Source of the DNA: Lepidodermella squamata | Taxonomy: Eukaryota; Animalia; Gastrotricha | DNA length: 64,000 bases | Assembly: GCA_047495785.1 (NCBI GenBank) | Contig: JBLDXI010000024.1 | Coordinates: 5,270,001-5,334,000, forward strand | Reading direction: 5' to 3' | Shown: one piece after another, positions 7,122-53,200 of the stretch | Layout: every line of letters begins with the position of its first letter | Numbering within the stretch: the stretch's first letter is position 1 | Made by a program: the position numbers and the translations under genes | The notes under the pieces: model-generated | Databases searched by the model: none | Told to the model about the DNA's origin: nothing | What the model saw: only the letters and a program-made list of their open reading frames with translations

Positions 7122-7399
7122 ACCATGCCACACGTCAATTTAATCGCTCTTTTTACAAGTACTTATCGACAATTTTAATCTACTTGCTAATATATTTATA
7201 GAAAAACTGAACTTTCGTTTATATTTACTAGCATTGATTCATTTTTTTAAATAATTCATGAAACACGTAAATCAGATGCCCAGAGTTCATTGCTTTTTAA
7301 AAAACAAATTTTCCATAAAAAGGTTACAATGTGCGTATCAGGCAAATAAAGAGCGCAGAAAAATCAAAAACCCTGACAATTAAACACGTTCCAGTATAA

Positions 7400-7470
7400 T
7401 CCTTGGTAGTATAGCGGTTAGTATCCCCCCTGTCACGCGGGAGACCAGGGTTCGATTCCCTGCCAAGGAG
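7400..7470 (+). tRNA. tRNA-Asp(GTC), possibly pseudogene (G missing in anticodon stem)
   Basis: Cloverleaf; CCCCCC-TGTCAC instead of CCCCGCC-TGTCAC seen at 23044. Confidence 0.8.
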
Positions 7471-7546
7471 CCAGCTCTTTTACATGCGGCGGCATGTGGA
7501 TTTCAAGCAAATTTATTCAGTAATAAAGTGAAAAAATGTTGATTGC

Positions 7547-7619
7547 CGCCCGATGTGGGGCTCGAACCCACGACCCTGGGATTAAGAGTCCCATGCTCTA
7601 CCGACTGAGCTAACCGGGC
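7547..7619 (-). tRNA. tRNA-Lys(CTT)
   Basis: GCCCGGTTAGCTCAGTCGG...CTCTTAA...TTCGAG cloverleaf. Confidence 0.97.
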
Positions 7620-7698
7620 TGAGGCGCTATCAATTGCCTGAGCGGACAATTATAAAGCAGTTGACTGCTGACAAATTTTGACTGCCATCAAAAATACT

Positions 7699-7771
7699 CG
7701 AGGCTGCCAGGAGTCGAACCTGGAATCTTCTGATCCGTAGTCAGACGCGTTGTCCATTGCGCCACAACCCC
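7699..7771 (-). tRNA. tRNA-Arg(ACG)
   Basis: Anticodon arm TCTGA-CTACGGA-TCAGA. Confidence 0.96.
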
Positions 7772-7838
7772 ATTCGGTCGAAAGAAGGCTTGCAAGCGCT
7801 AATTAGCAGGCAGGAATGGGACTGAAGTGAAAAATGCA

Positions 7839-7922
7839 TGTCAGAAGTGGGATTCGAACCCACGCCAGTAGAAACTGACTGCGACCTGAACGCAGCGCCT
7901 TGGACCGCTCGGCCATCCTGAC
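7839..7922 (-). tRNA. tRNA-Leu(CAG)
   Basis: GTCAGGATGGCCGAGCGG; loop TTCAGGT; long variable arm. Confidence 0.96.
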
Positions 7923-8091
7923 GAGATGGTGGAATAGATTGCTGATATCCTGCAGACGGCATTTTGCAAAGCTAAGATATCGCAGAGCAAGTACAGCAAA
8001 CAGCAAAGTCGTATAACTGTTGCCAATATAAAACTAGCCAGCTACGCCGATCGGGGTGTATCGTTTCTTAAACTGCTGAAGAAGCACTCAA

Positions 8092-8173
8092 GTCGCTATG
8101 CCCGAGTGGTTAAGGGGTCTGACTAGAAATCAGATGCGGTCTCCGCGCGTAGGTTCAAATCCTACTGGCGACG
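8092..8173 (+). tRNA. tRNA-Ser(AGA)
   Basis: TCTGA-CTAGAAA-TCAGA; long variable arm; G73. Confidence 0.96.
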
Positions 8174-8248
8174 ACAGTTATTTTTGCATTATAACGACTG
8201 AAACTCAGTTCTGCAGTTAGCCTCCAGAACAGACCTCGCTTTCATCAG

Positions 8249-8320
8249 GCGTCAGTGGTGTAACGGTCAGCATGGTTGCCTTCCAAGCAGCCGATCCGGG
8301 TTCGACTCCCGGCTGACGCA
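8249..8320 (+). tRNA. tRNA-Gly(TCC)
   Basis: GTTGC-CTTCCAA-GCAGC. Confidence 0.96.
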
Positions 8321-8399
8321 CACGTTTTTAGCTCACACGTTTGAAAGCAATTGCTAGTGACGAGATTAAAGCTGTCCTTCCCAAAACCAGCGTTCGAGA

Positions 8400-8471
8400 G
8401 GTCCCATGGTGTAGCGGTTAGCACTCTGGACTCTGAATCCAGCGACTCGAGTTCGATTCTCGATGGGACCT
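8400..8471 (+). tRNA. tRNA-Gln(CTG)
   Basis: CTGGA-CTCTGAA-TCCAG. Confidence 0.96.
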
Positions 8472-8571
8472 TGATACGTTTTTTCAAACAAACTTTCAGC
8501 TCACTCTCAACTGATGGAAACTTTCGATCATAATATTTGTTACCATTCAAACCTTTCCTTTCACTAGCCTA

Positions 8572-8643
8572 GGGGGCATAGCTCAGTGGTAGAGCGTCTC
8601 ATTCGCATTGTGAAGGTCTCGGGTTCAATCCCCGATGCCTCCA
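8572..8643 (+). tRNA. tRNA-Ala(CGC)
   Basis: G3:U70 pair; TCTCA-TTCGCAT-TGTGA (U-U mismatch). Confidence 0.92.
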
Positions 8644-8734
8644 GTTGGCACTTTTTTCGCGTAAATGTTGAGAAGTAACAGCCATAATACTGATGATATG
8701 AATCGGAAATAAGTCTAAGCATGCGAAAAAAGAG

Positions 8735-8818
8735 TGTCAGAAGTGGGGTTCGAACCCACGCCCTCTTTCGAGGACCAGATCTTGAGTCTGGCGCCTTAGA
8801 CCGCTCGGCCATCCTGAC
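8735..8818 (-). tRNA. tRNA-Leu(CAA), intronless
   Basis: CCAGA-CTCAAGA-TCTGG; long variable arm. Confidence 0.96.
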
Positions 8819-8918
8819 CGCCTGACTGAACATTCAATTGGATTCAGATGAACCAGCGGGTTCAGCTTCGAGCATTCACCAAACCTCAAATCTCGAATAG
8901 GCTGTACTTCATGTGACA

Positions 8919-8991
8919 GACGCTGTGGCGAAATGGCTATCGCGTCGGACTTCGGATCCGAAGATTGTGGGTTCGAGTCCCATCAGCGTCG
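8919..8991 (+). tRNA. tRNA-Arg(TCG)
   Basis: TCGGA-CTTCGGA-TCCGA. Confidence 0.95.
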
Positions 8992-9108
8992 TCCGCTTTT
9001 GTATTTTTGTTAGTTTCAGTAGGCTTCAGATGCCTCGGATTAAAACAAATAGTTCGACAACTCCTTGCGTAAATTTAATCTGCCTTCAATCCACCACGCA
9101 TTTCAATG

Positions 9109-9181
9109 GCCTTCCTAGCTCAGTCGGTAGAGCATGTGACTTTTAATCACAGGGTCGGGGGTTCGAGTCCCCCGGAGGGCG
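9109..9181 (+). tRNA. tRNA-Lys(TTT)
   Basis: TGTGA-CTTTTAA-TCACA. Confidence 0.96.
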
Positions 9182-9253
9182 CAAGCTTTTTCCTTGCTCA
9201 GTTTAGCTGCATTCGGCTGATTTCACCGCTTTGTCGAACCACTTGACTACGAA

Positions 9254-9326
9254 GGGGGATTAGCTCAAATGGTAGAGCGCTCGCTTAGCATGCGAGAGGT
9301 AACGGGATCGACGCCCGTATCCTCCA
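9254..9326 (+). tRNA. tRNA-Ala(AGC)
   Basis: CTCGC-TTAGCAT-GCGAG; G3:U70; ATCG T-loop. Confidence 0.96.
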
Positions 9327-9401
9327 GAATTTTTTCTGCCTCTAGAAACGGTTTCTTCGCCGAAATGAGACGACGTCGCTGAAATTCTAGCTGTCACCAT
9401 C

Positions 9402-9473
9402 GGCTCAGTAGCTTAGTGGTAGAGCGTCTGCCTAGTAAGCAGAAGATCGAGGGTTCGATCCCCCCCTGAGCCT
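9402..9473 (+). tRNA. tRNA-Thr(AGT)
   Basis: TCTGC-CTAGTAA-GCAGA. Confidence 0.94.
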
Positions 9474-9557
9474 GGTCTTGGGTGAATTTTTTGAAAATAG
9501 AGCCACACAACTTCGCCAGTCAGTTTTTATGTTGCATGCGTAGAAATGATAAAAATG

Positions 9558-9629
9558 TTCCCTGACCGGGAATCGAACCCGGGCCGCCGCGGTGAAAGCG
9601 CGGAATCCTAACCACTAGACCATCAGGGA
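9558..9629 (-). tRNA. tRNA-Glu(TTC)
   Basis: TCCCTGATGGTCTAGTGG; CCGCG-CTTTCAC-CGCGG. Confidence 0.96.
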
Positions 9630-9720
9630 GGTGCAAAATCCCTGTTGTATGCGTAAACTGTGAAGAACTCAAATTATCAACGTCATCGCACCTTCAGCAA
9701 CTCTGTGCAAAAAATAGAAT

Positions 9721-9792
9721 GGGCCCGTTCGGGAATTGAACCCGAGACCTCTCGCACCCGAAGCGAGAATCATACCCCTAGAACAACGGGCC
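9721..9792 (-). tRNA. tRNA-Pro(CGG)
   Basis: CTCGC-TTCGGGT-GCGAG; one D-stem/A-box substitution vs the other copies. Confidence 0.9.
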
Positions 9793-10547
9793 AGCCTGAC
9801 TTTGCCAACGGCAAGCAATCGCTTTGCGTTGTTGCTAAACTTTCAGGAGCATGGCGCATTTTCTAATCATTTTCGTGCATCATCGTACATCGAATTCGAA
9901 CCGGTCAGTGCATAGATCACTCTGTTCTCTAAGGATTTACTCAGCTATCGAGTTCTTACTCAAATGTGTTACACCAGGTTTTCTTGATGGAATTAACGAG
10001 TAATTTCTCTGTTAAGCCCATGTTCCGAATAGCCTATTCTTCGATTTTTCGTTTGAAAAATTGCGCAATGGCTGAAGCAAAAAACATTGCCGATGAAAAA
10101 TTGATTTTATTTTCGCAAAAAAGAGAGAGATAGAGATAGTATCGTTTTCGTGTTTGCAACAACAAGACTGGTTCAAATCGCCGCCATCTCCGCAATAATT
10201 ACAACATCAACAACGAGAGCAGGAATATCAATAACAATAACAGTAATAATTGCTGACACGGAGAATTGAAACGCATTTTACAATAAGTAAAAGAAATAAA
10301 CGCACTCGCATTCGAATAATAATTGTTTGTGCACAAGAAAAACAGGAGGAGAATTCGAAAAAGAGTCTAAATCGCTACAATAGATTACGGCTCAAAATGC
10401 ACTAGATCAAACAATAGAATCATTATATAATTAAAATCAGTCGTCAATTTTTGAAAAAAAAACTACCAACATGAAAATATTCGACACTTCTATGATCAAC
10501 AGGCAATAACAATTTGTTTCCAACAACGAGTGGGCAGTGTTCAACTT

Positions 10548-10678: not shown

Positions 10679-13600
10679 CTACGATGTGGTCGATGACGAA
10701 GCCGAGGACGCGGGCGAGTCTTCGCTGCCGAATTTAACTTTCAGCGATTTCACAACAACGGCCGAGCATTCCGTGGTGCTGGGTTTCGCCACGGAATGGC
10801 GCACTTTTTTCGACGGCGACACCAACGCCGCCTCCAGCAGTTCGCTTGTTGGTTTCTTGCGAGGCGATGCTGATAACGAGGATGAGGCACTACTGGTAGG
10901 TGAATTGAGCGGTTTTCTAGCCTCCGCCAGCCGAATCGCCCGTTGCAACTCGCTGGCAATGGCCGAGCATTCAGCGCTCGTCAGCACGCACTTCTTCATA
11001 CACTGTTGCATAGAAAAAAATTATTAAATATTTGGAGAGCCTTATTTAGGTATCGAAATTATTTGAACAGTGATGAAGTAAGGCGATCAGATGGCCCCTA
11101 CGTAGCTGCGTCATTCGCACGGGTCGAAGCCGGGTCAGGCCTTGCGGCCGACGGCAAACCCTACGCTCTGATAGGTAGAATCATCACTTCGCCGCATTTC
11201 ATCCTCACAAGTGCCGCAATTCGGGTTCAACTTGCCAAAAAAATTTGATTTTCTAGAACATCTTTAACGAAACTTAATCAGTCTTAACTCAATTTGTCAT
11301 GGTCCAATACAAATCGCTGAGTAAATTCGTTATTCGTAACGATTGGAATCCGAAGATGCGAAAAATCTAGAATTTAGAAAAATTTGCAATTTTTCGGACC
11401 TAATTAAATCGCAAATCAAGACTAGAACCAACAACGGATTCAACTCGATAACATTGCCCAATATTTCAAGCACAAACTATAAAGAACAAAACAATCTACT
11501 GTAATTTCTATCTTGAATCGCGACCAAAATAAAAAGCGATTTCTATGAAATTTCGGATACATTTCTCTTTTGCAATTTGCGGTTCAAACAAACAAAATCT
11601 ATCAAAATGTCGATGGATCAAAATCGAAAGTGACGTTTCGGTACTAGCTCGTACCATCATCAGACTCTAAAACAAAAAAGAAAAGGAATTACAGTAACAA
11701 TCACAACAATTAAGAAAAAACATAACAAGAATTCTAAAATAGCTTCAATTTGATCGAGTCCGTCTGCACGTTAAGACTGATTTTAAGCTTCGTCTTCTTA
11801 ATCAGAAGACTTTCGTGCAAGAGGCACTCCCACCTGCTGCGGCATTTGCGCAATATGGTGAAACAGGTGTGCAAATTGAAGTTATCCGGCAGATCATGTG
11901 ACTTGAGGTGCTTGCCGATGGAACTCGAGGCCAATTTGTGTTCATCAATGCGTTGGTGGAGATGGCGCGTCGTCATACCGATATACCCAGCGTCGCACTG
12001 GGCACACTTAAACTTGTAAACGACGCACTGACGATTGACAATATCGGGCTTGGGTTCCCTGGCCCCAAAGTCCTCGGCAATTTTTCGACTTGTGAAAATC
12101 GGCTGGATGGTAATCAGAATTCTGCTGGACAGGTCGTTCAGTCGGTGTTTGAGGCTTTGGGCGCTTTTTTCATCCTTGAAGGGAATAACAAATCGCACAG
12201 CATCCTCCTTGGGTTTCGGTGGCAAGTTTTCACGGGACATACGGCGGTCCAGGTACGATGCGAGAATCCGATCAAACATTGATTGAGGGTATTCCAACTC
12301 GGTAAAAATCTTTCGAAGAAGTTTTACCTCCTTGTCGAAACCAGGCCAGTCGCTTGTCAGGCGATCAGCTCTGTAAAGCATCGTCTTTATCAAACATTTC
12401 TTGTATTTGAGATCCGTGTGGCTGTGGAAGTGTAGTAAAAGTCCGGTGTCAGTCGGTTTGTGATAGACCTCTGTCTGAAGTAGCCCGCCAACGGACTTTA
12501 CCAGTGCTCCACAGAATGCGATGCTTCCATCCTTCTCGACTTCCATCGTGAATTTTACCGAGGGATGCAAGTTGTTTAAGACTTCGAGAAACTCGTTCGC
12601 GGCTGTTAGACCAGGCATTACTGTAAGCGTGTCGTCAACAAAGCGTCTGTAGAATCTCGGTAGAAGGCTTTATTGATGAGAAACTCGATTGTCTCGTCAA
12701 CTGGGACATTCGTGAACAACGAAGTAACGTCGTAAGAAACGAGGATTTCGCCAGGGTTGAGCTTCTTGCCAATTACCTCCTTGTTTGTGAAATCAATGAT
12801 GTCAGTTATCATGAACTCGTTTGAAGCTTTGTTGACGCTTTGTTGACGACACGCTTACAGTAATGCCTGGTCTAACAGCCGCGAACGAGTTTCTCGAAGT
12901 CTTAAACAACTTGCATCCCTCGGTAAAATTCACGATGGAAGTCGAGAAGGATGGAAGCATCGCATTCTGTGGAGCACTGGTAAAGTAAAACTTCTTCGAA
13001 AGATTTTTACCGAGTTGGAATACCCTCAATCAATGTTTGATCGGATTCTCGCATCGTACCTGGACCGCCGTATGTCCCGTGAAAACTTGCCACCGAAACC
13101 CAAGGAGGATGCTGTGCGATTTGTTATTCCCTTCAAGGATGAAAAAAGCGCCCAAAGCCTCAAACACCGACTGAACGACCTGTCCAGCAGAATTCTGATT
13201 ACCATCCAGCCGATTTTCACAAGTCGAAAAATTGCCGAGGACTTTGGGGCCAGGGAACCCAAGCCCGATATTGTCAATCGTCAGTGCGTCGTTTACAAGT
13301 TTAAGTGTGCCCAGTGCGACGCTGGGTATATCGGTATGACGACGCGCCATCTCCACCAACGCATTGATGAACACAAATTGGCCTCGAGTTCCATCGGCAA
13401 GCACCTCAAGTCACATGATCTGCCGGATAACTTCAATTTGCACACCTGTTTCACCATATTGCGCAAATGCCGCAGCAGGTGGGAGTGCCTCTTGCACGAA
13501 AGTCTTCTGATTAAGAAGACGAAGCTTAAAATCAGTCTTAACGTGCAGACGGACTCGATCAAATTGAAGCTATTTTAGAATTCTTGTTATGTTTTTTCTT

Positions 13601-15128
13601 AATTGTTGTGATTGTTACTGTAATTCCTTTTCTTTTTTGTTTTAGAGTCTGATGATGGTACGAGCTAGTACCGAAACGTCACTTTCAAATAAAACTGTCA
13701 ACAGAATATCGCTCTCCTTTTTGTTAAAGACAATGAAAAGATCTCAGCTATTGAAATCCGAACCAATCATTGGGAAAACATTTCGAAAATTCATGCCGTA
13801 GAAAAGCATCAAATTTCATCATAAATTGAACCCACAATTGCAAATCGTCTGACTATGTGACTTACTTTTTCATCGACTATCCATCGCCGCAGAGCGCCGA
13901 GAAGACTCGAAGCGCCTTGCAACAGCCTCGCAATGAATTCGGGCGATTCGCCCTCAAAATCACGCAATCTCTCCACAATTTGTTGAGCCGCAAAAAAGTT
14001 CACGCTATAAAATTCAGGAAACAAAAATTTCGGATCGGTATGAATTCGATGTTCGAGGTCGAAAATCCGCAACTGAAGGCCGATATCAAGTGAATGCAGG
14101 AAATTGCCGCCGAAGACGATACTATCACTCGGCGTCACGACCGAGTGAATCCACCCGCCCGGCAGCAGTAACGTCTGGCCCTGAGACAGACTCAGCCGGT
14201 AACACGGCTTCAAATCATCGCCCAAAAACCGCTCCACCCGATTCTTCGCATCATTCCACTTCTCGTAGGCTCGCAGATTTTCATCAGTCGGCGGGGCGAG
14301 GTAGAACACTTTTGAGCCGCGAATGATGTGGTACCAAACCGAAGACCCGCCGAAGTCGATGTGAAAATCTGTGTACGAACCGCCGGCGGAAATGAGGAGA
14401 AACCGCTCGGTGCGCGGGCACTCGACGCCGTTCACTTTTTCAGGCCAGAAACTAGGCAGCCACGATAGCTCTTTCACGAAATACGGCGGCGCGACTAAAC
14501 ACTCCATCGCCGTTCCAGTGAATTCGAGGCTTATCACGTTGTAGATTTTGTCGCGAGGTTTCGTTGTGAAGTAATCTCTCAATCTGCTCATATTCGACTC
14601 GAAAACTAGCTGCCGTTCGGAATCGATGATATCAATGCGACAATTCTCGCCTAGATACTGAATCGCGGTCTCAATTGAAAAACTAGAGTCGGGCAACCGC
14701 ATATCTAGGCCCTGGGTGTTCAACACGACGATGGGTTTAGAAAATCCGTTTGATTCGAAGAACTCCCGGCTCAACTTCGAGCCGTTTGGAAGGCAAGTGA
14801 CTATATCGAAGGCGTCCTGGAATTTGCGAGTTTTCAGCTGCTTTAGAAAACCGATTGTCCCACATTGCACTGGCTTTTGATCGGCATTTCGCTCGAAACA
14901 ATCGTGGCGGTGCCAGTTTTCACGCCGCCGCCGCTTCGATGGGCCGAAGTTTTTGACGCAAGACTGACAGTGGAACACTTCAAATTCAGCGGCTTGCCAT
15001 TCGGTGAGTGAGCAGCATTTGCCGTGGAACCAGCCGTTGCAGTGGTCGCATTGAATCATGAAACTGTCTGAGGCAGGTGCGAGCTTGCATTCGCCGCATG
15101 CCTCCTGTTCTTCGCCGTGATTTGACAT
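10679..15128 (-). CDS. PHF8: PHD-finger JmjC histone demethylase (PHF8/PHF2/KDM7 family)
   Basis: Exon 15128-13866 has a PHD (CDHC..WFHGKC) and JmjC (TDFHIDFGG, PGGWIHSVVT, FGGNFLH); phase-0 join to exon 11002-10679 completes the jumonji helical domain (ELQRAIRLAE); intron 11003-13865. Confidence 0.9.
11082..11193 (-). ncRNA. SNORD67: Intronic box C/D snoRNA, U6 Cm60 guide (SNORD67-like)
   Basis: Terminal stem GGCGA/TCGCC, C box GTGATGA, D box CTGA; guide CGTAGGGGCCAT pairs with U6 AUGGCCCCUGCG, fifth nt = C60; ~80 nt from the 3' splice site. Confidence 0.8.
11627..11668 (-). ncRNA. Minimal type I hammerhead ribozyme (PLE terminal)
   Basis: Reverse complement of 13644-13685. Confidence 0.85.
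11734..12812 (-). pseudogene. PLE RT/GIY-YIG ORF, 5'-truncated with internal deletion and frameshift
   Basis: ORFs 12618-12812 and 11734-12618; RT motif B missing between KAFY and PRFYRRFVDD. Confidence 0.9.
12837..13578 (+). pseudogene. Second PLE ORF fragment (RT end + GIY-YIG)
   Basis: ORF 13015-13578 identical to the C-terminal part of 11734-12618; ~170 bp deletion at ~12985. Confidence 0.9.
13644..13685 (+). ncRNA. Minimal type I hammerhead ribozyme (PLE terminal)
   Basis: AGAGT-CTGATGA-T-GGTAC gagcta GTACC-GAAAC-GTC-ACTTT: stems I and II, loopless palindromic stem III. Confidence 0.85.
13740..13827 (-). ncRNA. Candidate intronic box C/D snoRNA, target unknown
   Basis: C ATGATGA, D' ATGA, C'-like ATGATTG, D CTGA in the sense of the PHF8 intron; weak terminal stem. 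Confidence 0.4.
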
Positions 15129-17132: not shown

Positions 17133-19050
17133 TCAATATACCGTGGACTTGTCGTTACAATCGCGATGCTGCGAGCCATCAGCACAGTCGCAAAGCATGG
17201 CAGAACACCGCTTCAAATTCTTGCAATCGCACACGTCTTTGTGATAAATAGCTTCGTCAAAATATAAAGATTCGGCTGAAAAAGAAATACCCTGTGAACA
17301 ATCTGGACCAGTTTTCCACTTGTTGAAGCAAGCACAATAGCTTGCATCCTTGCAATAGGCGTCACTTGAACAAATGGTCGAGCCGCATAGCTCTAACAAG
17401 CATTTTGTTATTGAATCGCGGTTAACGAAAATAGAGGGTATGAAATTTACGTCTGCTACAAAGGGAGCCAGTCCAGCCTGTTCGGCAGGAACAGACATTA
17501 TTAGCTACGCACGTTCCCTTAGCGCAGCTAGGATTGCAAAGTGGCATTGCTGATTTTGTACCAGGTGCCGTTGCAGTTTTGGCTGTGGTAGGTACAGTCG
17601 CAGTTGTAGCTTGCGCAGTCGTAGTAGGAACGGTTGTGGTCGATGCGGTCGTTGTTGTAGCCGGAGGAGAGGTGGTTGTGGTTGGATCATCTACAGACAA
17701 ATATGCATGCCAATTTTCGACATTCTAAGAATATATATTCCCGGCTGCGGGAGCAACATAAGCTTCTAACTATACCTAAGACGTCTAATATTATATATAT
17801 GTTATGCTTTTGAGCATATCTCCATCCTAATCATCCTAATTTCCGACATTCCATCGCCAGTTTTCAGACATTCTTAGCTCGATGAACTAGGAGTTACTTA
17901 GAAGACGATGTCTTAAGAGTTTCGCATTGCTTTGGAGAATGAGAAAGTTTGCAAATTTTACCTAGGTTATAGACACGCAGATCAATCAATCTGACTGGGT
18001 CAGAACTGCCAACATTAACTGCCATCACGGCGAGAACAGCCGGTTCCATGCTCGAGTCAGAGATCGGAAGCAGTCCAGCGGGCAACGCTTGGGCAGTGTA
18101 AATCGCTGTGCAAGATGAATTGGTACACATGTCCATCCATAGCGTGTTGCCGTTTCTAACTACAATCCCAATGTGATGGCGGCCTTTAATCGTATTTTGA
18201 GACAGCGCAACTTTCGGAGTTGCCGTCCAGTTCATCAGATCAATTGTGGTTTTTGTAGGCGATGAAATGATTTGATAGCCGCCTCTGTAGCTCAGAACTC
18301 GAAAATGTAGCCCAGCGAAATTGCTCGTGTTGATAATGACCGTCTGCGATGTCGGTACTGCATAGGACAGTGTCGAGTTCGACAAAATGCTGATCGTGTA
18401 TTGATCTGAGTCCTTGCCAACGGGGGCGTCGATTTGCATTGTAGCATTTATTGAGAAGTTTGTTAGAGTGAATGGCTTGTGAGACAATGGGAGGTTAGTA
18501 TATCGCCTATTCGTTTGATTTACGTTTCCAGCTTACATTTTTGTTAATGAATGTTGTGAATATGGACGATGTGCTGGACGTCAGGAAGATTTCGTTATTA
18601 GATCCAAGAATGGGAAAATTGAGATTGCAGGTGTATCGCCAATTCGCAGCTTGGCAAAAAGATGCAAAATAATTTTACAGTGATTGTTATTTGAAGATGA
18701 TGCATACCGTAATTACCATCTCCGATGTACGAATATTCCGGCACGTAGTTGATTGGGTCTGTGATAGGTCCGATCACTTGCCCGCAAAAAAGAATTGTTC
18801 AGTACGAAGGTTAGCGAAGAAGACACGTACCTTGAGAACAATTCGTTCCGCTGAATCTGGCTAAGCATTGGCATGCGTTTGTGGAACCACAAACTCCTCC
18901 TCTTTGTTCGCAAGCTGGTGAGCACTCTACGAAAGGTGGCAAAAATAACGATGGGGAAATAATCTCCGAACTTTTAAGCTCACGCTGCAGGGTGGAGTGC
19001 GCGAAAACGGATAAGGTGAGCAGCAGTTTTGTATAATATTGCAGTTTCAT
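17133..19050 (-). CDS. Secreted EGF - lectin-like - Thr-rich linker - EGF protein (paralogue of 1053-2882)
   Basis: Signal peptide; EGF CSPACEQRGGVCGSTNACQCLARF; exon 17894-18487 similar to 1560-2078 (QNTIKGRHH.GIVVR.G.TLWMDMC); same C-terminal Cys exon. Confidence 0.82.
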
Positions 19051-20133
19051 GGTTGGTACCGGGTGTGACCTATTTTCTGATCAAAATTAGCGACTAAAGC
19101 CCTCTTCGAAATTAATCGGACGCTCCACGGCGTTATTGATCAAATTAAAGAGATTAATCTTTAATTGAAGTTCTTCACAAGAGTTAGCACCGGTTGGGTG
19201 GTAACTAGGATAAGTGATGCAGCGAAGTGGGTGATGAATACCGTCGAAAAACATCATATGGTCGCTTTAACTTGTGATGTTCACACCTTTCACGCTGCAC
19301 AATGCTTAAGAATGCGTCGCTCAGCTGCTTACGCTGAAATGTTTACGTTGGTGGTACTGTAGAAAAGTTTATTCATCAACCGTAATAAGCAGAATATAAA
19401 GACATCCCGCGAGGCTTTTCCATACAGATCAGGGCCGAATCGATTTCCTGCTTGCTGCGCTCGTAACGCCCTTACTTGGTCGTTCCTGTGGTCGCTGCAA
19501 AGCCCTGCCTTATTAATGTTTTATTGCTGTAAAATGCTGGTTAAAAGTGGTTAAGACGGAAATATTGGAACGAACGATTTGTTCCGTCTTACTAATAAAC
19601 CCGACGTTGAAAAAGAGACATCAGTAGCGTTTCGGAATGAGCTTCCATTTGACGGTAATTCTTTTACAATGAAGCGCAAACAATGGGTCATAAGAGCGAG
19701 TACGGATAGTGAAAATAATGCAGCTGCGTGCTGCGGTAATTTAGTAAGCGGTGTTAAGTTTTATTGAATGCGGCGCTGTGGTAATACTTAACGTCTTGCC
19801 GTTTACGAAAAAATATTTACCACAACATTAAACGCTTGGGACGAAACGCTAGCGATCTGGGGCTGTACAAGAACTTTTCTGGTTTAAACGCATCTGGTTT
19901 TCGTAAAAAATTTCAGCGATAATTTTCATGAAGCAAAAACGTAAATTCATGTGAAATTTCATTTTCCTTTTCCGTATTCGAAACGAGCAACTGACAAATC
20001 TGTTAGCGTAACTGCCGTAAGAACCCTCACTTAAATTAAAGGTGATTGAAAACTCAGCTCGCCGAAAACAGCGCTGAAAATTAGCATTTCGGATATAATG
20101 AAAAACCGCAATTGAGGAATAGGAAAAATTTAG

Positions 20134-20213
20134 TGTCAGAAGTGGGATTCGAACCTGAGTAGAAACTGACTGCGACCTGAACGCAGCGCCTTGGACCGCT
20201 CGGCCATCCTGAC
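20134..20213 (-). pseudogene. tRNA-Leu(CAG) pseudogene
   Basis: CACGCC replaced by TG, destroying the T stem. Confidence 0.85.
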
Positions 20214-20379
20214 GGGATGGTGGAATAGATTGATATCCCGCAGACGACATTTCGCAAAGCCTAGAGCGTCGCCACAAAGTAGGTTAATTACCTGTTGCCT
20301 GTTGCCAATATCAAACTTGAACTAGCCAGCAATGTCGATCAGGGTGTATCGTTATTGAAACTGCTGAAGAAGCACTCAA

Positions 20380-20461
20380 GTCGCTATGCCCGAGTGGTTA
20401 AGGGGTATGACTAGAAATCAGATGCGGTCTCCGCGCGTAGGTTCAAATCCTACTGGCGACG
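20380..20461 (+). tRNA. tRNA-Ser(AGA)
   Basis: As 8092 but with an A-G mismatch in the anticodon stem. Confidence 0.88.
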
Positions 20462-20536
20462 ACAGTTATTTTTGCATTATAACGACTGAAACTCAGTTCT
20501 GCAGTTAGCCTCCAGAACAGTCCTCGCTTTCATCAG

Positions 20537-20608
20537 GCGTCAGTGGTGTAACGGTCAGCATGGTTGCCTTCCAAGCAGCCGATCCGGGTTCGACTCCCGG
20601 CTGACGCA
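20537..20608 (+). tRNA. tRNA-Gly(TCC)
   Basis: Same as 8249 copy. Confidence 0.96.
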
Positions 20609-20687
20609 CACGTTTTTGGCTCACACGTTTGAAAGCAATTGCTAGTGACGAGATTAAAGCTGTCCTTCCCAGAACCAGCGTTCGAGA

Positions 20688-20759
20688 GGTCCCATGGTGT
20701 AGCGGTTAGCACTCTGGACTCTGAATCCAGCGACTCGAGTTCGATTCTCGATGGGACCT
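20688..20759 (+). tRNA. tRNA-Gln(CTG)
   Basis: Same as 8400 copy. Confidence 0.96.
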
Positions 20760-20863
20760 TGATACGTTTTTTCAAACAAACTTTCAGCTCACTCACTCTC
20801 AGCTGATGGAAACTTGCGATCGCAATATTTGTTACCATTCAAACCTTTTCTTTCACTAGCCTA

Positions 20864-20935
20864 GGGGGCATAGCTCAGTGGTAGAGCGTCTCATTCGCAT
20901 TGTGAAGGTCTCGGGTTCAATCCCCGATGCCTCCA
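20864..20935 (+). tRNA. tRNA-Ala(CGC)
   Basis: Same as 8572 copy. Confidence 0.92.
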
Positions 20936-21022
20936 GTTGGCAATTTTTTCGCGTAACCTCTCGAAGATTAGTTGCTATATCGGTGAAAGTGACCGGAAAT
21001 TACGCTAAAAATGTGAAAATAG

Positions 21023-21106
21023 TGTCAGAAGTGGGGTTCGAACCCACGCCCTCTTTCGAGGACCAGATCTTGAGTCTGGCGCCTTAGACCGCTCGGCCAT
21101 CCTGAC
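21023..21106 (-). tRNA. tRNA-Leu(CAA)
   Basis: Same as 8735 copy. Confidence 0.96.
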
Positions 21107-21206
21107 CAGATGTAGCTACTCTAGGAAATTGTTGTAATCCATCCGAAAATATGAGAAATTTGGCCGTTTAAAGGGCGAGCGCATTGCATTGCCGCATCTA
21201 TCGATA

Positions 21207-21279
21207 GGCGCTGTGGCGAAATGGCTATCGCGTCGGACTTCGGATCCGAAGATTGTGGGTTCGAGTCCCATCAGCGTCG
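21207..21279 (+). tRNA. tRNA-Arg(TCG)
   Basis: As 8919 with G at position 2. Confidence 0.95.
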
Positions 21280-21365
21280 GCTCTATTTTTGCTGGCCTTT
21301 TCGGCTGAGGCGTTATCATAGCAACAGAATTATCACTTGTCAAGCTGTCAAGAATAATCACAAGG

Positions 21366-21438
21366 GCCTTCCTAGCTCAGTCGGTAGAGCATGTGACTTT
21401 TAATCACAGGGTCGGGGGTTCGAGTCCCCCGGAGGGCG
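21366..21438 (+). tRNA. tRNA-Lys(TTT)
   Basis: Same as 9109 copy. Confidence 0.96.
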
Positions 21439-40693: not shown

Positions 40694-41093
40694 GTTGTGA
40701 TGTGCAAAAAATTAGTGAAAATTCCATGGCTTTTGTTTGCGACAACAAAAATCGAAAAATTAGATTTCGGCGCGCCTGTGATCTATCACCAGGTTAACGT
40801 TATATACAATGCTTTGATATTAATTTAATTAATTTATCGCTTTTTAAAACTGCGGACCGAACAACTTTTGTGAACGTTATTTTGACATTTTTAAAGTCTC
40901 CTTAAAATTCGATTTTTCCCTGTAACATTTTGATTACTATCCACTTCGCTGCTTGAGAATTATTATTATTATTGTAAAATGAAATTTTTCGCCACGCTTT
41001 GTATTGATTATATTGTTTATTAAAAAATCGACGGAATTTTACTTGATCAATAATAAAAAGCTGAGAAATCGATTTTTAGTGGTGATTTATGCT

Positions 41094-42356
41094 ATGATAT
41101 TGCGGCGGTTTTGCTCCTCCTCGAAAACTGGTGCTGATTTGGCGAAAATTTACCTGGCAAACTCGGCGCTGACTTTCCACCCAGAGGAGCAGTTGTTCAC
41201 GAATGAAAACTACTGGAATCAACGATTCGCGGACTCGGTTTCGAAGCGGCACTCGAGGTTTCAAGAAAAACTGGCCGGTCTGCAGTTTTTGGCATTTTCC
41301 GCGAAATTCAGCGAATTAACCGAGCTGAAGCAGGAATTTAAGCGGCTGAATGTTAAAACCAAGGGTGAAAAAGTCGATTTTCAACGCAGAAAAGCCGTAA
41401 AATCGCGGCTAGTCGAGCTGCGATCGGAGCTGTTGTTGAATTGGCTAGCATTACCCGTTGAGCTGGAGCAAGATGTTCCGCTGAAAGAAGACTTGGTTGT
41501 GTCAACTTTCAACTGCGAACCGATTGCTATTGAGCGAGATGAAAAATCAACGCCAATTCGCGATGCGGAATTTATGCCTGAAATCGCGCCCGGAGCCGTT
41601 TTTTATTCAGGAAATTTGGCGAAAATCGACGTGAAATTGAAAGAGTTTTTGCAGGAGAAATTTCGCCAGAAATTTCTGCAAATCTCCTGCCCCGACACGC
41701 TACGGCTGCCGTTTTACCTGTCAACGCTCGGCGAAGCGTTCCACTTGACTGATTTCGACTCGATACGCCAGCTTACGTTGAAAAACGACGCGTTGGACTC
41801 GAAAAATTCGACTGGCCTGGAAAATTCGTTCGTATTGAGGGGCCAATCGACGCAAACTCTGATGTGCCAATTCGCGAAACAATTGATTAAAAAGAAATAT
41901 TTTCCGAAATTGGTCTTCAACCAGGGCGAAATTTACTATTTTTCGAAATATCCGCAACAAAAGTCGGCAATTTCCTTCCTGATTTTGGCTCACAATTCCG
42001 AGCAGTTAACGCAGCAGTTCGACGAGGTGACGAAATTCTTACACGAGGCGATTTTTCAACACTTGCGGCTGCCGTTCAGTTGCGTCAATGTCGCAGCGTC
42101 TCGCTTGGCTGGCTGCGAGTCGAAGCGGCTGGACTTTCTCGGTTCAGACGACCTAGTTTTCGGCTATTTTGCCATGCATCGCGATTATTTTTCGCGGCGC
42201 TGTGAAATTTTCGCGTCAACCGATGGCGCGAGTGATACGTATCGGAACTTGCATTTCCCTGTCATGGCGGCTGGATCGCTTGATGTTGAGGCGATGCTGA
42301 AAGGACTTGTGCCACGATACCACGAAAATCGGCTCACTGAATTGCTTTCATTTTAA
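41094..42356 (+). CDS. Degenerate mitochondrial seryl-tRNA synthetase-like protein (SLIMP-like)
   Basis: Mitochondrial-type N-terminus MILRRFCSS, coiled coil ending LALP, class II core remnants (FYSGNLA, VAASRL, DYFSRR) but lacking motif-2 FRxE/HQF; intronless. Confidence 0.7.
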   Translation: MILRRFCSSSKTGADLAKIYLANSALTFHPEEQLFTNENYWNQRFADSVSKRHSRFQEKLAGLQFLAFSAKFSELTELKQEFKRLNVKTKGEKVDFQRRKAVKSRLVELRSELLLNWLALPVELEQDVPLKEDLVVSTFNCEPIAIERDEKSTPIRDAEFMPEIAPGAVFYSGNLAKIDVKLKEFLQEKFRQKFLQISCPDTLRLPFYLSTLGEAFHLTDFDSIRQLTLKNDALDSKNSTGLENSFVLRGQSTQTLMCQFAKQLIKKKYFPKLVFNQGEIYYFSKYPQQKSAISFLILAHNSEQLTQQFDEVTKFLHEAIFQHLRLPFSCVNVAASRLAGCESKRLDFLGSDDLVFGYFAMHRDYFSRRCEIFASTDGASDTYRNLHFPVMAAGSLDVEAMLKGLVPRYHENRLTELLSF

Positions 42357-42604
42357 ATCGGGAAAATAAATTTAATTTGTTTTGTTTACATTTTAACAAA
42401 GTCTTTCCTTGAGAGTTTGATTGATCACAAAATTCTGAATTTTTCGGAATTCTCAAATTTGAATTTAAATTTATTAACTTTATAACTTATAGTTAATATT
42501 CCTAACATACATTTTTGGTTTATTTACCAGTTTTTTTGAATTTTGAATTTTCAAATTTTTTTCTTGTTAATTTTAGTGTTAATTTTTATCGATTTGAAAA
42601 GAAA

Positions 42605-43324
42605 ATGCATCACTTGGCGCCATTTAGTGCTCAGACAACGATAGCAAGCGTTCACGAATTTGCGGCCGGCATTCCGCCCAAGGACTGGCAACCGCCTTCA
42701 GTTACCATGGAAACGACGATGGGCGTGTTCGAGGTGGAACTCTACTGGAAACACGCGCCGAATACGTGCCGCAATTTCGCCGAGTTGGCCCGGCGCGGCT
42801 ACTACAACGGCATCAAATTCCACCGCATCATCCGCGATTTCATGGTTCAGGGCGGCGATCCTACCGGAACAGGTATATAATTCCTAAAATAATACTCGGT
42901 TTTGAACATTCTTCAAGGAGAAATTCTCTATACAAAAAATCATGCATGTTGTATCAATTTTTTTACTTCATTTAGGCCGAGGCGGCGCGTCGATTTATGG
43001 CCGCACTTTCGATGACGAAATTTCGGACGATCTCAAGCATACCGGTGCTGGAATTTTGTCCATGGCCAACTGTGGCGCTAATACTAACGGTTCGCCAATT
43101 TCGCCTTAATTTTTCTGATTTTTTTTTAAATTTCAAATTGAAATTTAGGGTCGCAATTTTTCATCACCCTAGCGCCAACGCAATGGCTCGACGGCAAGCA
43201 CACGATTTTCGGCCGGATCCGCGGAGGCATGCAGGTTGTCAAGGCGATGGGCCTCGTTGAAGTCGACGAAGCTGACCGGCCGGTGGACGATGTGAAAATT
43301 CTCAAAGCTTACCCGGTTGCTTGA
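42605..43324 (+). CDS. PPIL1: Cyclophilin-type PPIase-like 1
   Basis: [30 protein letters not shown]; exons 42605-42872, 42976-43089, 43149-43324. Confidence 0.95.
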
Positions 43325-48263: not shown

Positions 48264-49042
48264 GTTAAGAATACATTGAAAATATATGTTTATGTCCCGA
48301 ATTTTCAATTTCTCTTCCTAAATCGACACAGAATGGTATTTCGTGCCACTTTTTACGGCGAAATTATAGGAGACCTCCTTGTAAATGCAATACTTTTTTC
48401 GTTCTCCCACCTAACATACGTACCTAATGTTGGCTTTGACTTGGTTTACGATAGCAATGTTTAAAGTAAAACCAGGTATTCTGCGTCCATTTATCATTTA
48501 CGGGGAGAAATTTGAATTTGAAAACGAACAATATAATAATAAAAATCGTTCCATCAAATCGATAAAATCGGTGCATATCAACGGCGGAGAGTTTATTGGG
48601 TTTTTATGCTCAGAAACTTACGCTGAAGGATTACAGGAATTTATTCTTTCTGATCGAAGAAATAATATCGATGGCGATCGAGAGTGGACTGCCTAAATGG
48701 GAAAAGCCGATGGGCTCAGGATAGTTTTCTATGTGCTATTAAAAACTGCCCGTTGACAATCAATCGGCTTTCCCTGAACTCTGACGAAGAATGGAAAGTA
48801 AAATATGATGATGCCGACACAATACATAAAGCTGCATGCGACAAACAAGCTGCATTCCTTGAAGTTCGGCTTTAGATCAGCATTTTTATAACGGAAGAAG
48901 GATTGGCATGTCACGTTGAAATTGAAACTAATATGTTTTAAAAAAACTAAATTGCTTCATTCCAATTATTGAACGATAAGGTGCGAAATCGGCCCCTACT
49001 CGCAGATGTTTAGAGTTTAGAGGGTAATACGATTTCCAAGTT

Positions 49043-49276
49043 TTATACCGGTTCAAATAGTTGCCAGCTGATCCCTCGAGTCCTCATCATCTGCACTTGC
49101 CTGCACATTTCGGTGATGTCAACATTTTTCCGGACACTGAAAAACGGTGAGATTGCCTTTGTAAGAGTTTTGAAGCTACTTTGAGCCGTCAGAGGTTTTC
49201 TAGACGCTGCTTCTGAACTTGTGTTCAATCGCCAATCATTCGAAACTATGCTAGTTTTCTTAGTTTCAGCATCCAT
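49043..49276 (-). CDS. Small protein of unknown function (77 aa)
   Basis: ATG in good context downstream of a splice acceptor (CTACAG); no recognisable domain. Confidence 0.35.
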   Translation of the reverse strand: MDAETKKTSIVSNDWRLNTSSEAASRKPLTAQSSFKTLTKAISPFFSVRKNVDITEMCRQVQMMRTRGISWQLFEPV

Positions 49277-50242
49277 GTTTTCCGAACCCTGGTAGCGTCC
49301 ATAGTGCCCTTTTCAACATTACCTGTAGCAGTTCTGAACTTGGGTAATTGCTCTCAAATTGGTCAATTTTTTTGAAAAAATGACAGCCAATTTGACATCC
49401 AAAATTATACCGAAATTTCGAAGATGAGCTTGTCAATGATAAGACATTTTCGCACGGCCAACTTTTCTAAATTATTTGTGTCCATTTTTAGTTCATGAAA
49501 TTAATTGTACACCGGTGATTTCCTAATAAAATTCCGCGTAAAGTAGCCGTTCTCGGTTACGCCTGACCGCGCCAGGTGTGCGTCACATGGTAAAACACAC
49601 AGTAGGTACTTGCATAAAATCGATCAATACAGCGTTATATACGTGACCGGCCAATCGATCGATCGATCGCCCGTCAGCCCTAGTACTTGTTTTTTCATTC
49701 GCAATAATGTATACTCACACACACGCGCATGTATATACTGTAGGTAAAAGGTATACGCCGCCATGTTCGATGCGTTCGCTTTCCATCATCGTCGTTGCCA
49801 GCAGCCGCACTTTTCAATATTACGTGTATATGTACCGCCTATATTGCTACTTTTTGTGTCTCTGTGTCTCGCCAGCATGCACCGAAATCGCAATTTCGCG
49901 TGCTCCAAATTTCGCCATCTCAAAGCCAGGGAATCCACGTTGGTTTCAATGATCTCTCGAAAATCCTGTAGGGTGATCTTTACACCTGGCTCGTTAATTT
50001 TAATGTGACGAACCTAAGCTATCTTGACCAAGGATTCTCGACTTGGTAGGAATAGATGAATATATAATCGATTTTTCCATTTCCCGTCTTTAATTTCTTC
50101 AAGTCACGTAGTTGTCACTGTGTCAAGATTTGTCACCTTTTGTCACCCAAAAGGTCAAAATTCGGTCAACCCTTGACCCGAGAGTACTGCTCTGTAATTT
50201 CTTCGTCAAAACCTGGTGCTTTTGTAGGCAATTTAGCCGCAT

Positions 50243-53200
50243 ATGAATTACAACAACGAGTGGCAACCGCCGTCGAACTACAACCGGCCGAACATGCAGC
50301 CGATGCCGAGGGGCGTGGCCGATGCAGCGGCGCCCGACGACGGCTCGTACACCAACCGTTCGTTCCGTGGCGATTCGAACAACAACCCGTTCACGGACAC
50401 GCACGAGGAAGTCGTCTTCTCGAGTTTGACGCAGCAACGCGACCCGCCACGAGAGCGGCCCATCGGCGTGCCGGCGAGTGCGATGACTCCGAGGTCTGGC
50501 GGGCAGGGGATGCCGGCGCCGCTCAGTGGGCGAGGGGTGCCGCCGCCCGGGGCGCCCTACCACGACCCGCGCTTCTCGAGCGACCCGGAGGGAGACAAGT
50601 TCGAAAACATTGCCGTACCTCTGTCACTGGCTGCCATGAGCGTCGGCGCTCCCTGCTGCTCGATACCGGTAAGCAAAAGCTAGATATCCCATAGCTACTG
50701 AAATTCTCAAAGTCAACGTTTGTTTAAATTGGTTTTCGCTTCTCGTCGCAGGAGAAGCCCAAGAAATCGCCCGAAGGCTCATTGAATGTTCCCACGCACG
50801 GAAATCTTTAGTAAAAGGCGAAAGATTTGTACGTTTTGCGCGGAAACCAGAGTAACAAGAAAGCGCCTCCCCATTGCGACCCCTTTCAAGAGTAAGATTT
50901 TATTCCGCCAGGGTATTAATTTGCACATTCGTGGTATTGCGAAAGAATCGGGGATAGGAAAAATGTATGTCAGAAGTGGGATTCGAACCCACGCCAGTAG
51001 AAACTGACTGCGACCTGAACGCAGCGCCTTGGACCGCTCGGCCATCCTGACGGGATGTTGGAGTAGATTGCTGATATCCTGCTGACGGCATTTTGCAAAG
51101 CTAAGCTTTCGCAAAGCGAGTGGAGCGTTGGCACTAAGTAGTATAATTACCTGTTGCCAATATAAAACTAAAACTAGCCAGCAATGTCGAGCAGGGTGTA
51201 TCGTTATTGAAACTGCTGAATGAGCACTCAAGTCGCTATGCCCGAGTGGTTAAGGGGTCTGACTAGAAATCAGATGCGGTCTCCGCGCGTAGGTTCAAAT
51301 CCTACTGGCGACGACAGTTTTTGCATTATAACGACTGAAGCTCAATTCTGCAGATATAGCCTCCAGAACATGAACAGTCCTCGCTTTCATCAGGCGTCAG
51401 TGGTGTAACGGTCAGCATGGTTGCCTTCCAAGCAGCCGATCCGGGTTCGACTCCCGGCTGACGCACACGTTTTTAGCTCACACGTTTGAAAGCAGTTGCT
51501 GGTGACGAGATTAAAGCTGTCCTTCCCAAAACCAGCGTTCGAGAGGTCCCATGGTGTAGCGGTTAGCACTCTGGACTCTGAATCCAGCGACTCGAGTTCG
51601 ATTCTCGATGGGACCTTGATACGTTTTTTCAAACAAACTTTCAGCTCACTCACTCTCAGCTGATGGAAACTTGCGATCGCAATATTTGTTACCATTCAAA
51701 CCTTTTCTTTCACTAGCCTAGGGGGCATAGCTCAGTGGTAGAGCGTCTCATTCGCATTGTGAAGGTCTCGGGTTCAATCCCCGATGCCTCCAGTTGGCAA
51801 TTTTTTCGCGTAACCTCTCGAAGATTAGTTGCTATATCGGTGAAAGTGACCGGAAATTACGCTAAAAATGTGAAAAATGGTGTCAGAAGTGGGGTTCGAA
51901 CCCACGCCCTCTTTCGAGGACCAGATCTTGAGTCTGGCGCCTTAGACCGCTCGGCCATCCTGACCAGATGTAGCTACTCTATGAAATTGTTGTAATCCAT
52001 CCGAAAATATGAGAAATTTGGCCGCTCATTTTCGCGCATTTCATTTCTCTCGTCAAGCTGCGTGGAAGCTGCCGTTTAAAGGACGAGCGCATTGCATTGC
52101 CGCATCTATCGATAGGCGCTGTGGCGAAATGGCTATCGCGTCGGACTTCGGATCCGAAGATTGTGGGTTCGAGTCCCATCAGCGTCGGCTCTATTTTTGC
52201 TGTCCTTTTCGGCTGAGGTGTTATCAGCAGCAGAATTATCACTTGTCAAGCTGTCAAGAATAATCACAAGGGCCTTCCTAGCTCAGTCGGTAGAGCATGT
52301 GACTTTTAATCACAGGGTCGGGGGTTCGAGTCCCCCGGAGGGCGCAATATTTTTACCCAGAACCCAGAGTAACTTGTTTATGGGATCGACCGGCTGCTAA
52401 GAAGACGAATATATCTCGAATGGTAGAGCGCTCGCTTAGCATGCGAGAGGTAACGGGATCGACGCCCGTATCCTCCATATACTTTTTTCGGCAAGATAAA
52501 AAAGGCTGAAATGAGGAGACTGCGCTTGCGAAAATAAAGCAGTCAACCGCGGCTCAGTAGCTTAGTGGTAGAGCGTCTGCCTAGTAAGCAGAAGATCGAG
52601 GGTTCGATCCCCCCCTGAGCCTGGTCTTGACACTTTTTGCAGCATTCGGAGGTCTTCCGTCCCTTTTATATAGCCATTTCATTCAGGATCAAAATTGGAA
52701 AGGCTAAAAGTGTTCCCTGACCGGGAATCGAACCCGGGCCGCCGCGGTGAAAGCGCGGAATCCTAACCACTAGACCATCAGGGAGGTGCAAAATCCCTGT
52801 TGTATGCGTAAACTGTGAAGAACTCAAATTATCAACGTCATCGCACCTTCAGCAACTCTGTGCAAAAAATAGAATGGGCCCGTTCGGGAATTGAACCCGA
52901 GACCTCTCGCACCCGAAGCGAGAATCATACCCCTAGACCAACGGGCCTCGGTAGACGACTAAAATACATGATAACATACAGCCTTTTCATGCTTTTCTTG
53001 CCTTTTTATGTTAATTGCCATGTCACTGTTTTGCAGTCGCTGATCTGTGCGTGGGGCTGCTGTTGCTGTGCACCTCAAGAAAAGCGCCGCCGTTCCATCT
53101 TCGCGATAATCTTCGCATCACTGGCGATTGCCGGCGGCCTGATAATCATCATCGGCGCGTGTGCCGGCTGGTCAGAACGCGATGAAATCATGGAGTATTT

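Follow-up and report, generated by a model that had tools for sequence, protein, structure and literature searches.

The three tRNA gene clusters described here are probably orphons of a chromosomal tandem tRNA repeat, which arose by local copying and were later altered by gene conversion and by erosion of their edges. The probability of this reading is put at about 0.7. The clusters lie in a window of 64,000 nucleotides of Lepidodermella squamata DNA (contig JBLDXI010000024.1, positions 5,270,001 to 5,334,000), and two large head-to-tail arrays of the same 20-tRNA unit were found on the same contig, 120-330 kb from the clusters. ARAGORN and Rfam gave the gene order and strands stated in the original prediction, with 15, 19 and 11 called tRNA genes in clusters 1, 2 and 3. 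The count of 20 distinct anticodons for 14 amino acids was also borne out, and tRNAs for Cys, His, Ile, Met, Trp and Val are absent from clusters 1-3.

Cluster 1 extends over 7329-9810 and its 15 genes, from Asp to Pro(CGG), were called at 7400-9792; it starts within the Gly-Asp spacer and ends about 18 nt into the Pro-Phe spacer. Cluster 2 (20116-23264) has 19 genes at 20133-23258, from Leu(CAG) to Lys(CTT), and represents about 94% of one unit, only Arg(ACG) being missing. Its tRNA-Tyr(GTA) gene (22558-22643, forward strand), which was found by Rfam, has a 13-nt intron, and no 5S gene was detected by Rfam in this near-complete unit. Cluster 3 (50951-52947) runs from Leu(CAG) to Pro(CGG), and its boundary coincides exactly with the 5' end of Pro(CGG). 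It had been credited with 12 genes. Eleven intact-looking genes were called at 50968-52947, but the twelfth, tRNA-Ala(AGC) at about 52406-52478 on the forward strand, is a pseudogene which has lost its first ~12 nt at the 5' end and is called by neither program. The clusters are not uniform in sequence: 8 of the 46 tRNA genes in the window carry private lesions, and the spacers are mosaics of two haplotypes. Damaged genes and gene remnants sit at the fragment edges. The tRNA-Asp(GTC) gene at the edge of cluster 1 (7400-7470, forward strand) carries a substitution besides a 1-nt deletion and scores 47.4 bits in Rfam against 53.8, and tRNA-Leu(CAG) at the edge of cluster 2 (20133-20213, reverse strand) has a 4-nt deletion in the T-arm (37.5 bits vs 54.6); overall, the tRNA genes of the window score 37-70 bits. 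All 46 have a T4 terminator at a distance of 13 nt or less, against a background of 22%; with cloverleaf scores of this size and a T-run terminator apiece, they count as separate Pol III genes. Within the window the clusters are not themselves tandem and their spacers contain no short tandem repeats. The window also holds a perfect 702-bp inverted repeat at 11626-13686.

Likeness between the clusters goes far beyond chance, because spacers align as well as genes (83-92% over 2 kb). The homology noted earlier for the Gly-Asp spacer between clusters 1 and 2 was recovered at 7329-7625 vs 22977-23264 with 87% identity (E 3e-96). The flanks of the clusters are unique, the neighbours being FGD, KDM7, ALDH and XRN genes, and no flank homology was seen among the clusters except over 55 nt at the left edges of cluster 2 and cluster 3. 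A U5 snRNA gene (50738-50855, reverse strand) lies 112 nt downstream of Leu(CAG) of cluster 3. This U5-Leu(CAG) junction recurs 1.5 Mb away (C24:3.83 Mb) with 80% identity and is therefore an older cassette edge. In degenerate form, the left flank of cluster 2 (20078-20132) resembles the spacer between U5 and Leu in cluster 3 (50917-50967) rather than the Arg-Leu spacer of the arrays; the shuffle p is ~0.0005 at the anchored position, to which a shared terminator run contributes. As their left edge is of the U5 type, clusters 2 and 3 may predate the present arrays. Fragment ends differ between copies and no target-site duplications were found, the longest word shared between flanks being 5-6 nt, which is the chance level.

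It had been proposed that the gene order closes into a circle of 20 tRNAs and that head-to-tail units of ~3.35 kb should exist. Such units were found twice, with the closed 20-gene order, and their structure is known from BLAST coordinates and identities. In array A, which lies 118-209 kb upstream, about 25 units follow one another with a continuous marker order (309+903+1087+1046 = 3,345 bp). Array B is made up of roughly 19-20 units, each near 3,380 bp, with a period of 3,360-3,388; the presence of Phe-Asn-Tyr in its units is indicated by spacing (1,607-1,626 bp vs 1,619 in cluster 2). The full order thus exists and more copies are present than the three clusters. None of the outcomes that were to refute the original prediction has come about. 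The two arrays have identical gene order and different spacers. One query matched every B unit at 98-99% identity but every A unit at 82%, and the reverse query gave 99% to array A vs 85% to array B. The arrays thus show the pattern of concerted evolution, high identity within arrays and lower identity between them, and by their sequence organisation they are tandem multi-tRNA gene arrays comparable to rDNA. They are most likely a high-copy, rDNA-like source of tRNAs alongside other cassettes of the genome. Array A contains a sub-repeat of 896 bp, to the base the same length as the spacing from Leu(CAG) to Leu(CAA). Its Leu-Ala block is present in 35 copies and the other blocks in 22-25, and six deletion units were observed.

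About 15 further fragments lie around the arrays on both strands. They show differing permutations in both orientations and cluster near the arrays, at distances up to about 300 kb. Three of these dispersed fragments traverse the Lys(CTT)-Arg(ACG)-Leu(CAG) junction. What had been described as circular permutation is a set of different cuts through a head-to-tail repeat. Clusters 1-3, as copies of the tandem unit standing outside the main locus amid unrelated sequence, can on this basis be classed as orphons. Orphons differ by 1-25% from one another and from the arrays, with private indels, and several fragments have array-type spacers at 98-100% from end to end. Cluster 2 is 96-99% identical to array A from Leu(CAA) onward and 93% in the Leu-Ala part. 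In cluster 1 the spacers of Lys-Arg-Leu(CAG)-Ser are of the array-A type (97-98% to A) and those of Leu(CAA)-Arg(TCG)-Lys(TTT)-Ala-Thr-Glu are of the array-B type (91-94% to B, 76% to A). Switches between spacer haplotypes are located at invariant tRNA genes: between a B-type and an A-type fragment none of 737 gene bases differ, whereas 157 of 798 aligned spacer bases do. Among 77 informative sites, 1,513 of 2,926 pairs are incompatible, and neighbouring sites share a partition 55 times vs 19.5 when shuffled (block test, p=5e-5). The switching of spacers at tRNA genes in cluster 1 points to ectopic recombination or conversion as the origin of the A/B mosaicism; conversion cannot be told apart here from the insertion of units that were already chimeric. 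A simple one-way seeding of intact fragments, as first envisaged, finds no support in copies that are A/B mosaics with older edges.

Segments no longer than one unit were probably copied out of the arrays to intergenic places close by, in local events driven by recombination, such as ectopic repair or template switching, or loop-out and local re-insertion. The copies would then have been overwritten repeatedly by gene conversion, with tract ends in the near-identical tRNA genes, and their edges would have eroded by deletion. Homology-driven exchange would also operate within the arrays, as the Leu(CAG)/Leu(CAA) sub-repeats and deletion units suggest. The orphons themselves are probably by-products under relaxed selection. 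We infer that transfer ran from array to orphon, since interiors are 96-99% array-type and ends fall within spacers, yet the older U5-type edges have to be set beside this.

One route within the orphon model, corresponding to the circle of the original prediction, is that single units loop out as extrachromosomal circles, open at random points and re-integrate as permuted copies. This is possible, though not favoured. No fragment is longer than one unit, a fragment at contig 5,354-5,357 kb measures 3,299 bp, close to one unit cut open in the Leu(CAA)-Arg(TCG) spacer, cluster 2 spans nearly a whole unit, and tandem repeats are known to generate circles which may form orphons (PMC3225859). However, the limit of one unit is not diagnostic, since a longer insert would loop out to one unit, and permutation is expected from any tandem array. 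The local bias is strong, most copies being within 300 kb on one contig, and the mosaics with their older edges require later exchange anyway. It is rather doubtful that dispersed clusters of several tRNA (and snRNA) genes came first, as a family that spread by duplication, and that arrays A and B grew later from two of them and now convert the rest. Related order blocks do exist on C7, C16, C54, C66 and at C24:3.82 Mb with 71-87% identity, the recurrent U5-Leu(CAG) edge of cluster 3 fits such a state, and fission of arrays with re-arraying is known in Entamoeba (PMC2652664). On the other hand, fragments start and stop within spacers, at places spread over the circular order, and array-type spacers run through the whole of several of them. 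The syntenic place in a relative (FGD-KDM7-RPS7-SPARC-MFS) has no tRNA genes, although other gene insertions differ there, so that it is not a clean empty site. Scans of metagenomes for Lys(TTT) next to Ala(AGC), with or without Thr, gave nothing real and carry little weight. There is a small chance that the gastrotrich tRNA set consists of large multi-gene cassettes that spread themselves by recombination. Circles of unit length would leave the arrays and re-integrate close by, be updated by conversion through the tRNA genes, stay transcribed and give rise to further arrays whose gene content is new and may include snRNA genes. If true, this would provide an animal model for watching the birth, spread and reshuffling of tRNA cassettes.

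A non-redundant "kit" had been suggested, with one complementary cassette for the missing isotypes. That the unit was selected as one-of-each to balance tRNA ratios, with a complementary kit and with functional dispersed modules such as chromatin boundaries, is improbable. In its favour, 20 anticodons drawn uniformly from 46 would all differ with a probability of about 0.008, order is maintained in two arrays despite diverged spacers while the genes are invariant, and tDNA clusters serve as boundaries in fission yeast (10.1101/309815). A complete decoding set was rejected, as the unit reads at most 35 of 61 sense codons even with generous wobble. Units of array A gain and lose genes, as its unequal block counts and deletion units show, window genes are damaged, and the recurrence of related order blocks on other contigs speaks against a single complementary cassette. 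Recombination alone also predicts non-redundancy, and it probably explains the "one of each" content: a second same-strand copy of a gene within the unit would loop out. As array A sub-repeats exactly in the Leu(CAG)/Leu(CAA) register, "one of each" may be a stable end state of recombination and not a designed kit. The three most similar gene pairs are on opposite strands (Pro 96%, Lys 82%, Arg 77%), a weak observation with a chance of about 1 in 8.

It is very improbable that whole-genome amplification (phi29 chimeras, rolling-circle concatemers) or assembly created these structures. If this is the published assembly, it derives from a single animal by way of MDA (PMC11660948), and the perfect inverted repeat would fit such an origin, but the divergence and private indels of the orphons, the ordered unit variants of arrays that lie within a 5.48-Mb contig amid unique syntenic genes, and the lack of chimeric contigs in the genome paper (PMC11660948) all argue otherwise. 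Cargo of a transposable element (SINE, DNA transposon, retrocopy) was rejected for variable ends and lack of target-site duplication, a polycistronic operon for mixed strands and separate terminators, and segmental duplication with flanks for lack of flank homology beyond the short left edge of clusters 2 and 3.

In Xenopus a tandem unit of 3.18 kb has 8 tRNA genes. The original prediction held that known units carry far fewer genes, but that of Schizosaccharomyces japonicus has 18 tRNA and three 5S genes; on chromosome 2, units of 9 tRNAs, 3 5S and 9 tRNAs, 5.6-6.8 kb long, are present in 34 and 46 copies (PMC7619369). As here, the units are tRNA-rich and head-to-tail, two sister arrays share one order with different spacers, and shorter deletion variants occur, in S. 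japonicus of a 15-tRNA unit. However, S. japonicus is a fungus, its arrays, which are linked to the centromere, include 5S genes and LTRs, its genes are less dense (18 in 5.6 kb, against 20 in 3.35 kb here), and no halo of permuted mosaic fragments is described (PMC7619369). In Entamoeba most tRNA genes are likewise in tandem arrays which evolve in concert and whose units fuse, split and lose genes, but with at most five genes per unit and with short-tandem-repeat spacers, which clusters 1-3 do not have (PMC2652664). The human 1q23.3 tDNA VNTR and the ncRNA arrays of Hydractinia and Nematostella are animal tandem tRNA repeats of mixed orientation and changing copy number; they have far fewer genes per unit than 20 (five in 7.3 kb at 1q23.3), and in the parts consulted comparable dispersed permuted copies are not reported (PMC4041453, PMC11067881). 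Orphons are known for tandem histone, rDNA and 5S families (Childs et al. 1981, cited in PMC3225859) and are likewise dispersed, partial, diverging copies outside the main locus; here the unit has 20 tRNAs, the copies are mosaics of two source arrays and exchanges lie at tRNA genes. The L. squamata genome paper makes no mention of tRNA (PMC11660948) and no report on nuclear tRNA arrays of gastrotrichs or flatworms was found in the literature, so that, as far as this search goes, ours is the first nuclear tRNA gene organisation for Gastrotricha. No new molecular function is revealed. Described animal tandem tRNA units have a handful of genes; the present system, with its 20-gene unit, two sister arrays and permuted mosaic orphons, belongs to a type of array already known from a fission yeast, from amoebae and from mammals, and is unusually rich in genes for an animal. 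Since the sub-repeat fits the Leu(CAG)/Leu(CAA) register to the base, exchange has taken place between genes that are no more than 73% alike, and arrays and orphons together form a compact natural record of copy shedding, of tRNA genes as anchors of conversion and of non-redundancy without selection for a kit.

Three tRNA-gene clusters were found in the window by ARAGORN and Rfam, with the gene order and strands originally described: cluster 1 with 15 genes (7400-9792), cluster 2 with 19, including a Tyr gene with an intron (20133-23258), and cluster 3 with 11 called genes (50968-52947) and a twelfth, Ala(AGC), whose 5' end is missing. Together they carry 20 anticodons for 14 amino acids. Homology covers spacers and genes alike (83-92% over 2 kb), and the Gly-Asp-Lys overlap between clusters matches at 87% (E 3e-96). 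A run of at least four T lies within 13 nt of the 3' end in 46/46 genes as compared to 22% of random positions, and gene strands within the clusters are mixed. An operon reading was ruled out by these two properties, and the genes are thus predicted to be independent Pol III genes. Private lesions were observed in 8 of the 46, the worst at cluster edges, which suggests that selection on these genes is relaxed.

The published L. squamata assembly (122 Mb, 157 contigs, 43% GC) was generated by MDA and HiFi from a single animal (PMC11660948); our search covered 121 Mb in 151 contigs, and statements on arrays are based on BLAST coordinates and identities. A single exact match to the 23-nt star sequence of the L. 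squamata 'Novel-1' microRNA (PMC6468455) was obtained in these contigs, against none for the control. It was found that the postulated head-to-tail master array with a closed gene order exists twice on C24, the contig to which the window (C24:5,270,001-5,334,000) belongs. Array A, detected with short queries, occupies C24:5,060.6-5,151.8 kb (91 kb, ~25 units). Five markers, four of them overlapping and one bridging, recur there in closed-circle order, and their distances of 309, 903, 1,087 and 1,046 bp give a 3,345-bp unit. In array B (~4,947-5,018 kb) the markers follow one another in that order too, and its 19-20 units measure 3,360-3,388 bp; the Phe-Asn-Tyr part of its units is deduced from spacing only. 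The proposed circular permutation therefore stands as closure of the order but requires no circle, as any cut through a tandem repeat suffices. Within each array the units are homogeneous, whereas the two arrays have diverged (98-99% vs 82% with one query, 99% vs 85% with another). Between a B-type and an A-type fragment, 0/737 gene bases and 157/798 aligned spacer bases differ.

The Leu(CAG)-to-Ala(CGC) block forms a sub-repeat of 1-6 copies in array A; its 896-bp period coincides exactly with the offset between corresponding bases of Leu(CAG) and Leu(CAA). These two genes, 73% identical overall, share the longest exact match (20 nt) of any same-strand pair; the pairs that are more alike (Pro, Lys and Arg) have their members on opposite strands, a suggestive pattern at most. 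Gene loss by deletion has affected six units: three of 2,395 bp are without Tyr to Arg(ACG), and three of ~2,940 bp lack ~400 bp from Leu(CAG). In the Phe-Tyr region, three units are 9 bp shorter. Sub-repeats in the Leu-Leu register and deletion units thus show that homology-driven exchange between tRNA genes is active in the array. The idea of a selected tRNA kit was not sustained: the unit could read at most 35 of 61 codons, gene ratios in array A are uneven (35 vs 22-25 copies), and non-redundancy would arise without selection because such exchange would delete same-strand duplicates.

Besides clusters 1-3, orphons, the dispersed partial copies outside the arrays, lie on C24 at ~4,778, 4,790, 4,869, 4,873, 4,880, 4,908, 4,918, 5,049, 5,234, 5,246, 5,355, 5,413 and 5,455 kb, counts that are lower bounds. 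They occur on both strands with variable start and stop points, several have gene remnants at their edges, and at least three continue across Lys(CTT)-Arg(ACG)-Leu(CAG) and include genes of either side. Their flanks are unique, and a search of these flanks for target-site duplications revealed none. A lone 120-bp piece of the Phe-Asn spacer (C24:5,246,436-5,246,555; 93%), without an intact tRNA, is a very small orphon remnant. The orphons at 5,356 and 5,413 kb, 58 kb apart on opposite strands, have an identical 6-nt deletion in the anticodon loop of Asn; a broken gene has therefore been copied or converted between sites. Blocks of this gene order with 71-91% identity also exist at C24:3.82 Mb and on five other contigs (C23:248,661; C66:223,566; C54:3,035,774; C7:1.38-1.57 Mb; C16:0.99-1.04 Mb), where the commonest recurring block is Arg(TCG)-Lys(TTT)-Ala(AGC).

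The window clusters and fragments are mosaics of A-type and B-type spacers. Cluster 1 is 97-98% identical to array A across Lys-Arg-Leu; from Leu(CAA) to Glu it is 91-94% identical to array B and only 76% to array A, and its Glu-Pro spacer is identical to those of clusters 2 and 3. Cluster 2 resembles array A (96-99%) along most of its length, but its Leu-Ser spacer is identical to that of the orphon at 5,234 kb and matches A-type copies at 75%. In a comparison of six copies, informative sites formed 2,926 pairs, of which 1,513 were incompatible, and like partitions were clustered into blocks (55 vs 19.5 expected, p=5e-5), with spacer-type switches located at tRNA genes. A degenerate left edge, distinct from the arrays' spacer, is common to clusters 2 and 3. 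A U5 snRNA gene (window 50738-50855) lies 112 nt beyond that of cluster 3, and this junction recurs at C24:3.83 Mb with 80% identity. Therefore, in clusters 2 and 3 at least, edges are older than interiors. The genome holds at least 48 U5 snRNA copies; ~20 of them form a tandem array at C25:47,000-107,000 (periods ~1,819 and ~2,374 bp), and others adjoin cassette fragments.

The analysis shows tandem masters, partial copies that are dispersed but locally biased, mosaic spacers, the Leu-Leu register and decay. Our preferred reading, to which we give a probability of about 0.7, is that one unit or less would be copied locally into intergenic sites, conversion anchored in tRNA genes would follow, and orphon edges would erode. 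A free monomer circle could be one route of such local copying, though a doubtful one: no fragment exceeds one unit (maximum 3,299 bp), but this limit equally fits collapse of longer inserts. It is possible, with still lower probability, that the dispersed clusters are older and spawned the arrays later. An artefact of whole-genome amplification is very unlikely, given the 1-25% divergence among copies and the ordered variants within the arrays.

Genes near the clusters are animal-type (FGD RhoGEF, KDM7/PHF8, ALDH, XRN), with long unbroken ORFs for KDM7/PHF8 and FGD-type RhoGEF at 13809-15128 and 38091-43318. The order cyclophilin-unknown-FGD-KDM7-RPS7-SPARC-MFS is common to this region and a related animal in ENA metagenomes (37% GC, proteins 43-84% identical), probably another gastrotrich. 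The FGD-KDM7 gap is 1.4 kb in the relative vs 23 kb here, with cluster 2 inside, and the relative's syntenic locus has no tRNA genes; since further genes have been gained or shifted, however, this locus does not qualify as a clean empty site. A Penelope-like retroelement fragment at 11626-13686 (C-terminal reverse-transcriptase region and GIY-YIG), with a perfect 702-bp inverted duplication and a second of 153 bp, is either a young inverted insertion or an amplification chimera. A gene family without annotation or Pfam match (39-2760, 17133-18929 and up to 39 kb upstream) has several diverged copies, with exons at 70-80% DNA identity.

tRNA genes go unmentioned in the L. squamata genome paper (PMC11660948), and a literature search for comparable units in gastrotrichs found no report. 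The view that known tandem units carry far fewer genes does not hold for S. japonicus, where two sister arrays, of 34 and 46 copies, are built from units of 5.6-6.8 kb with 18 tRNAs and three 5S genes each (PMC7619369), much like arrays A and B, so gene-rich units are already known. Entamoeba units, in contrast, have at most five genes (PMC2652664) as compared to 20 here; the human 1q23.3 unit has five genes (PMC4041453), and numerous ncRNA arrays occur in Hydractinia (PMC11067881). Orphons are likewise known, and their possible origin from circles is a long-standing discussion (PMC3225859). To these systems the present study adds a second array, an orphon halo and a mosaic record of exchange.
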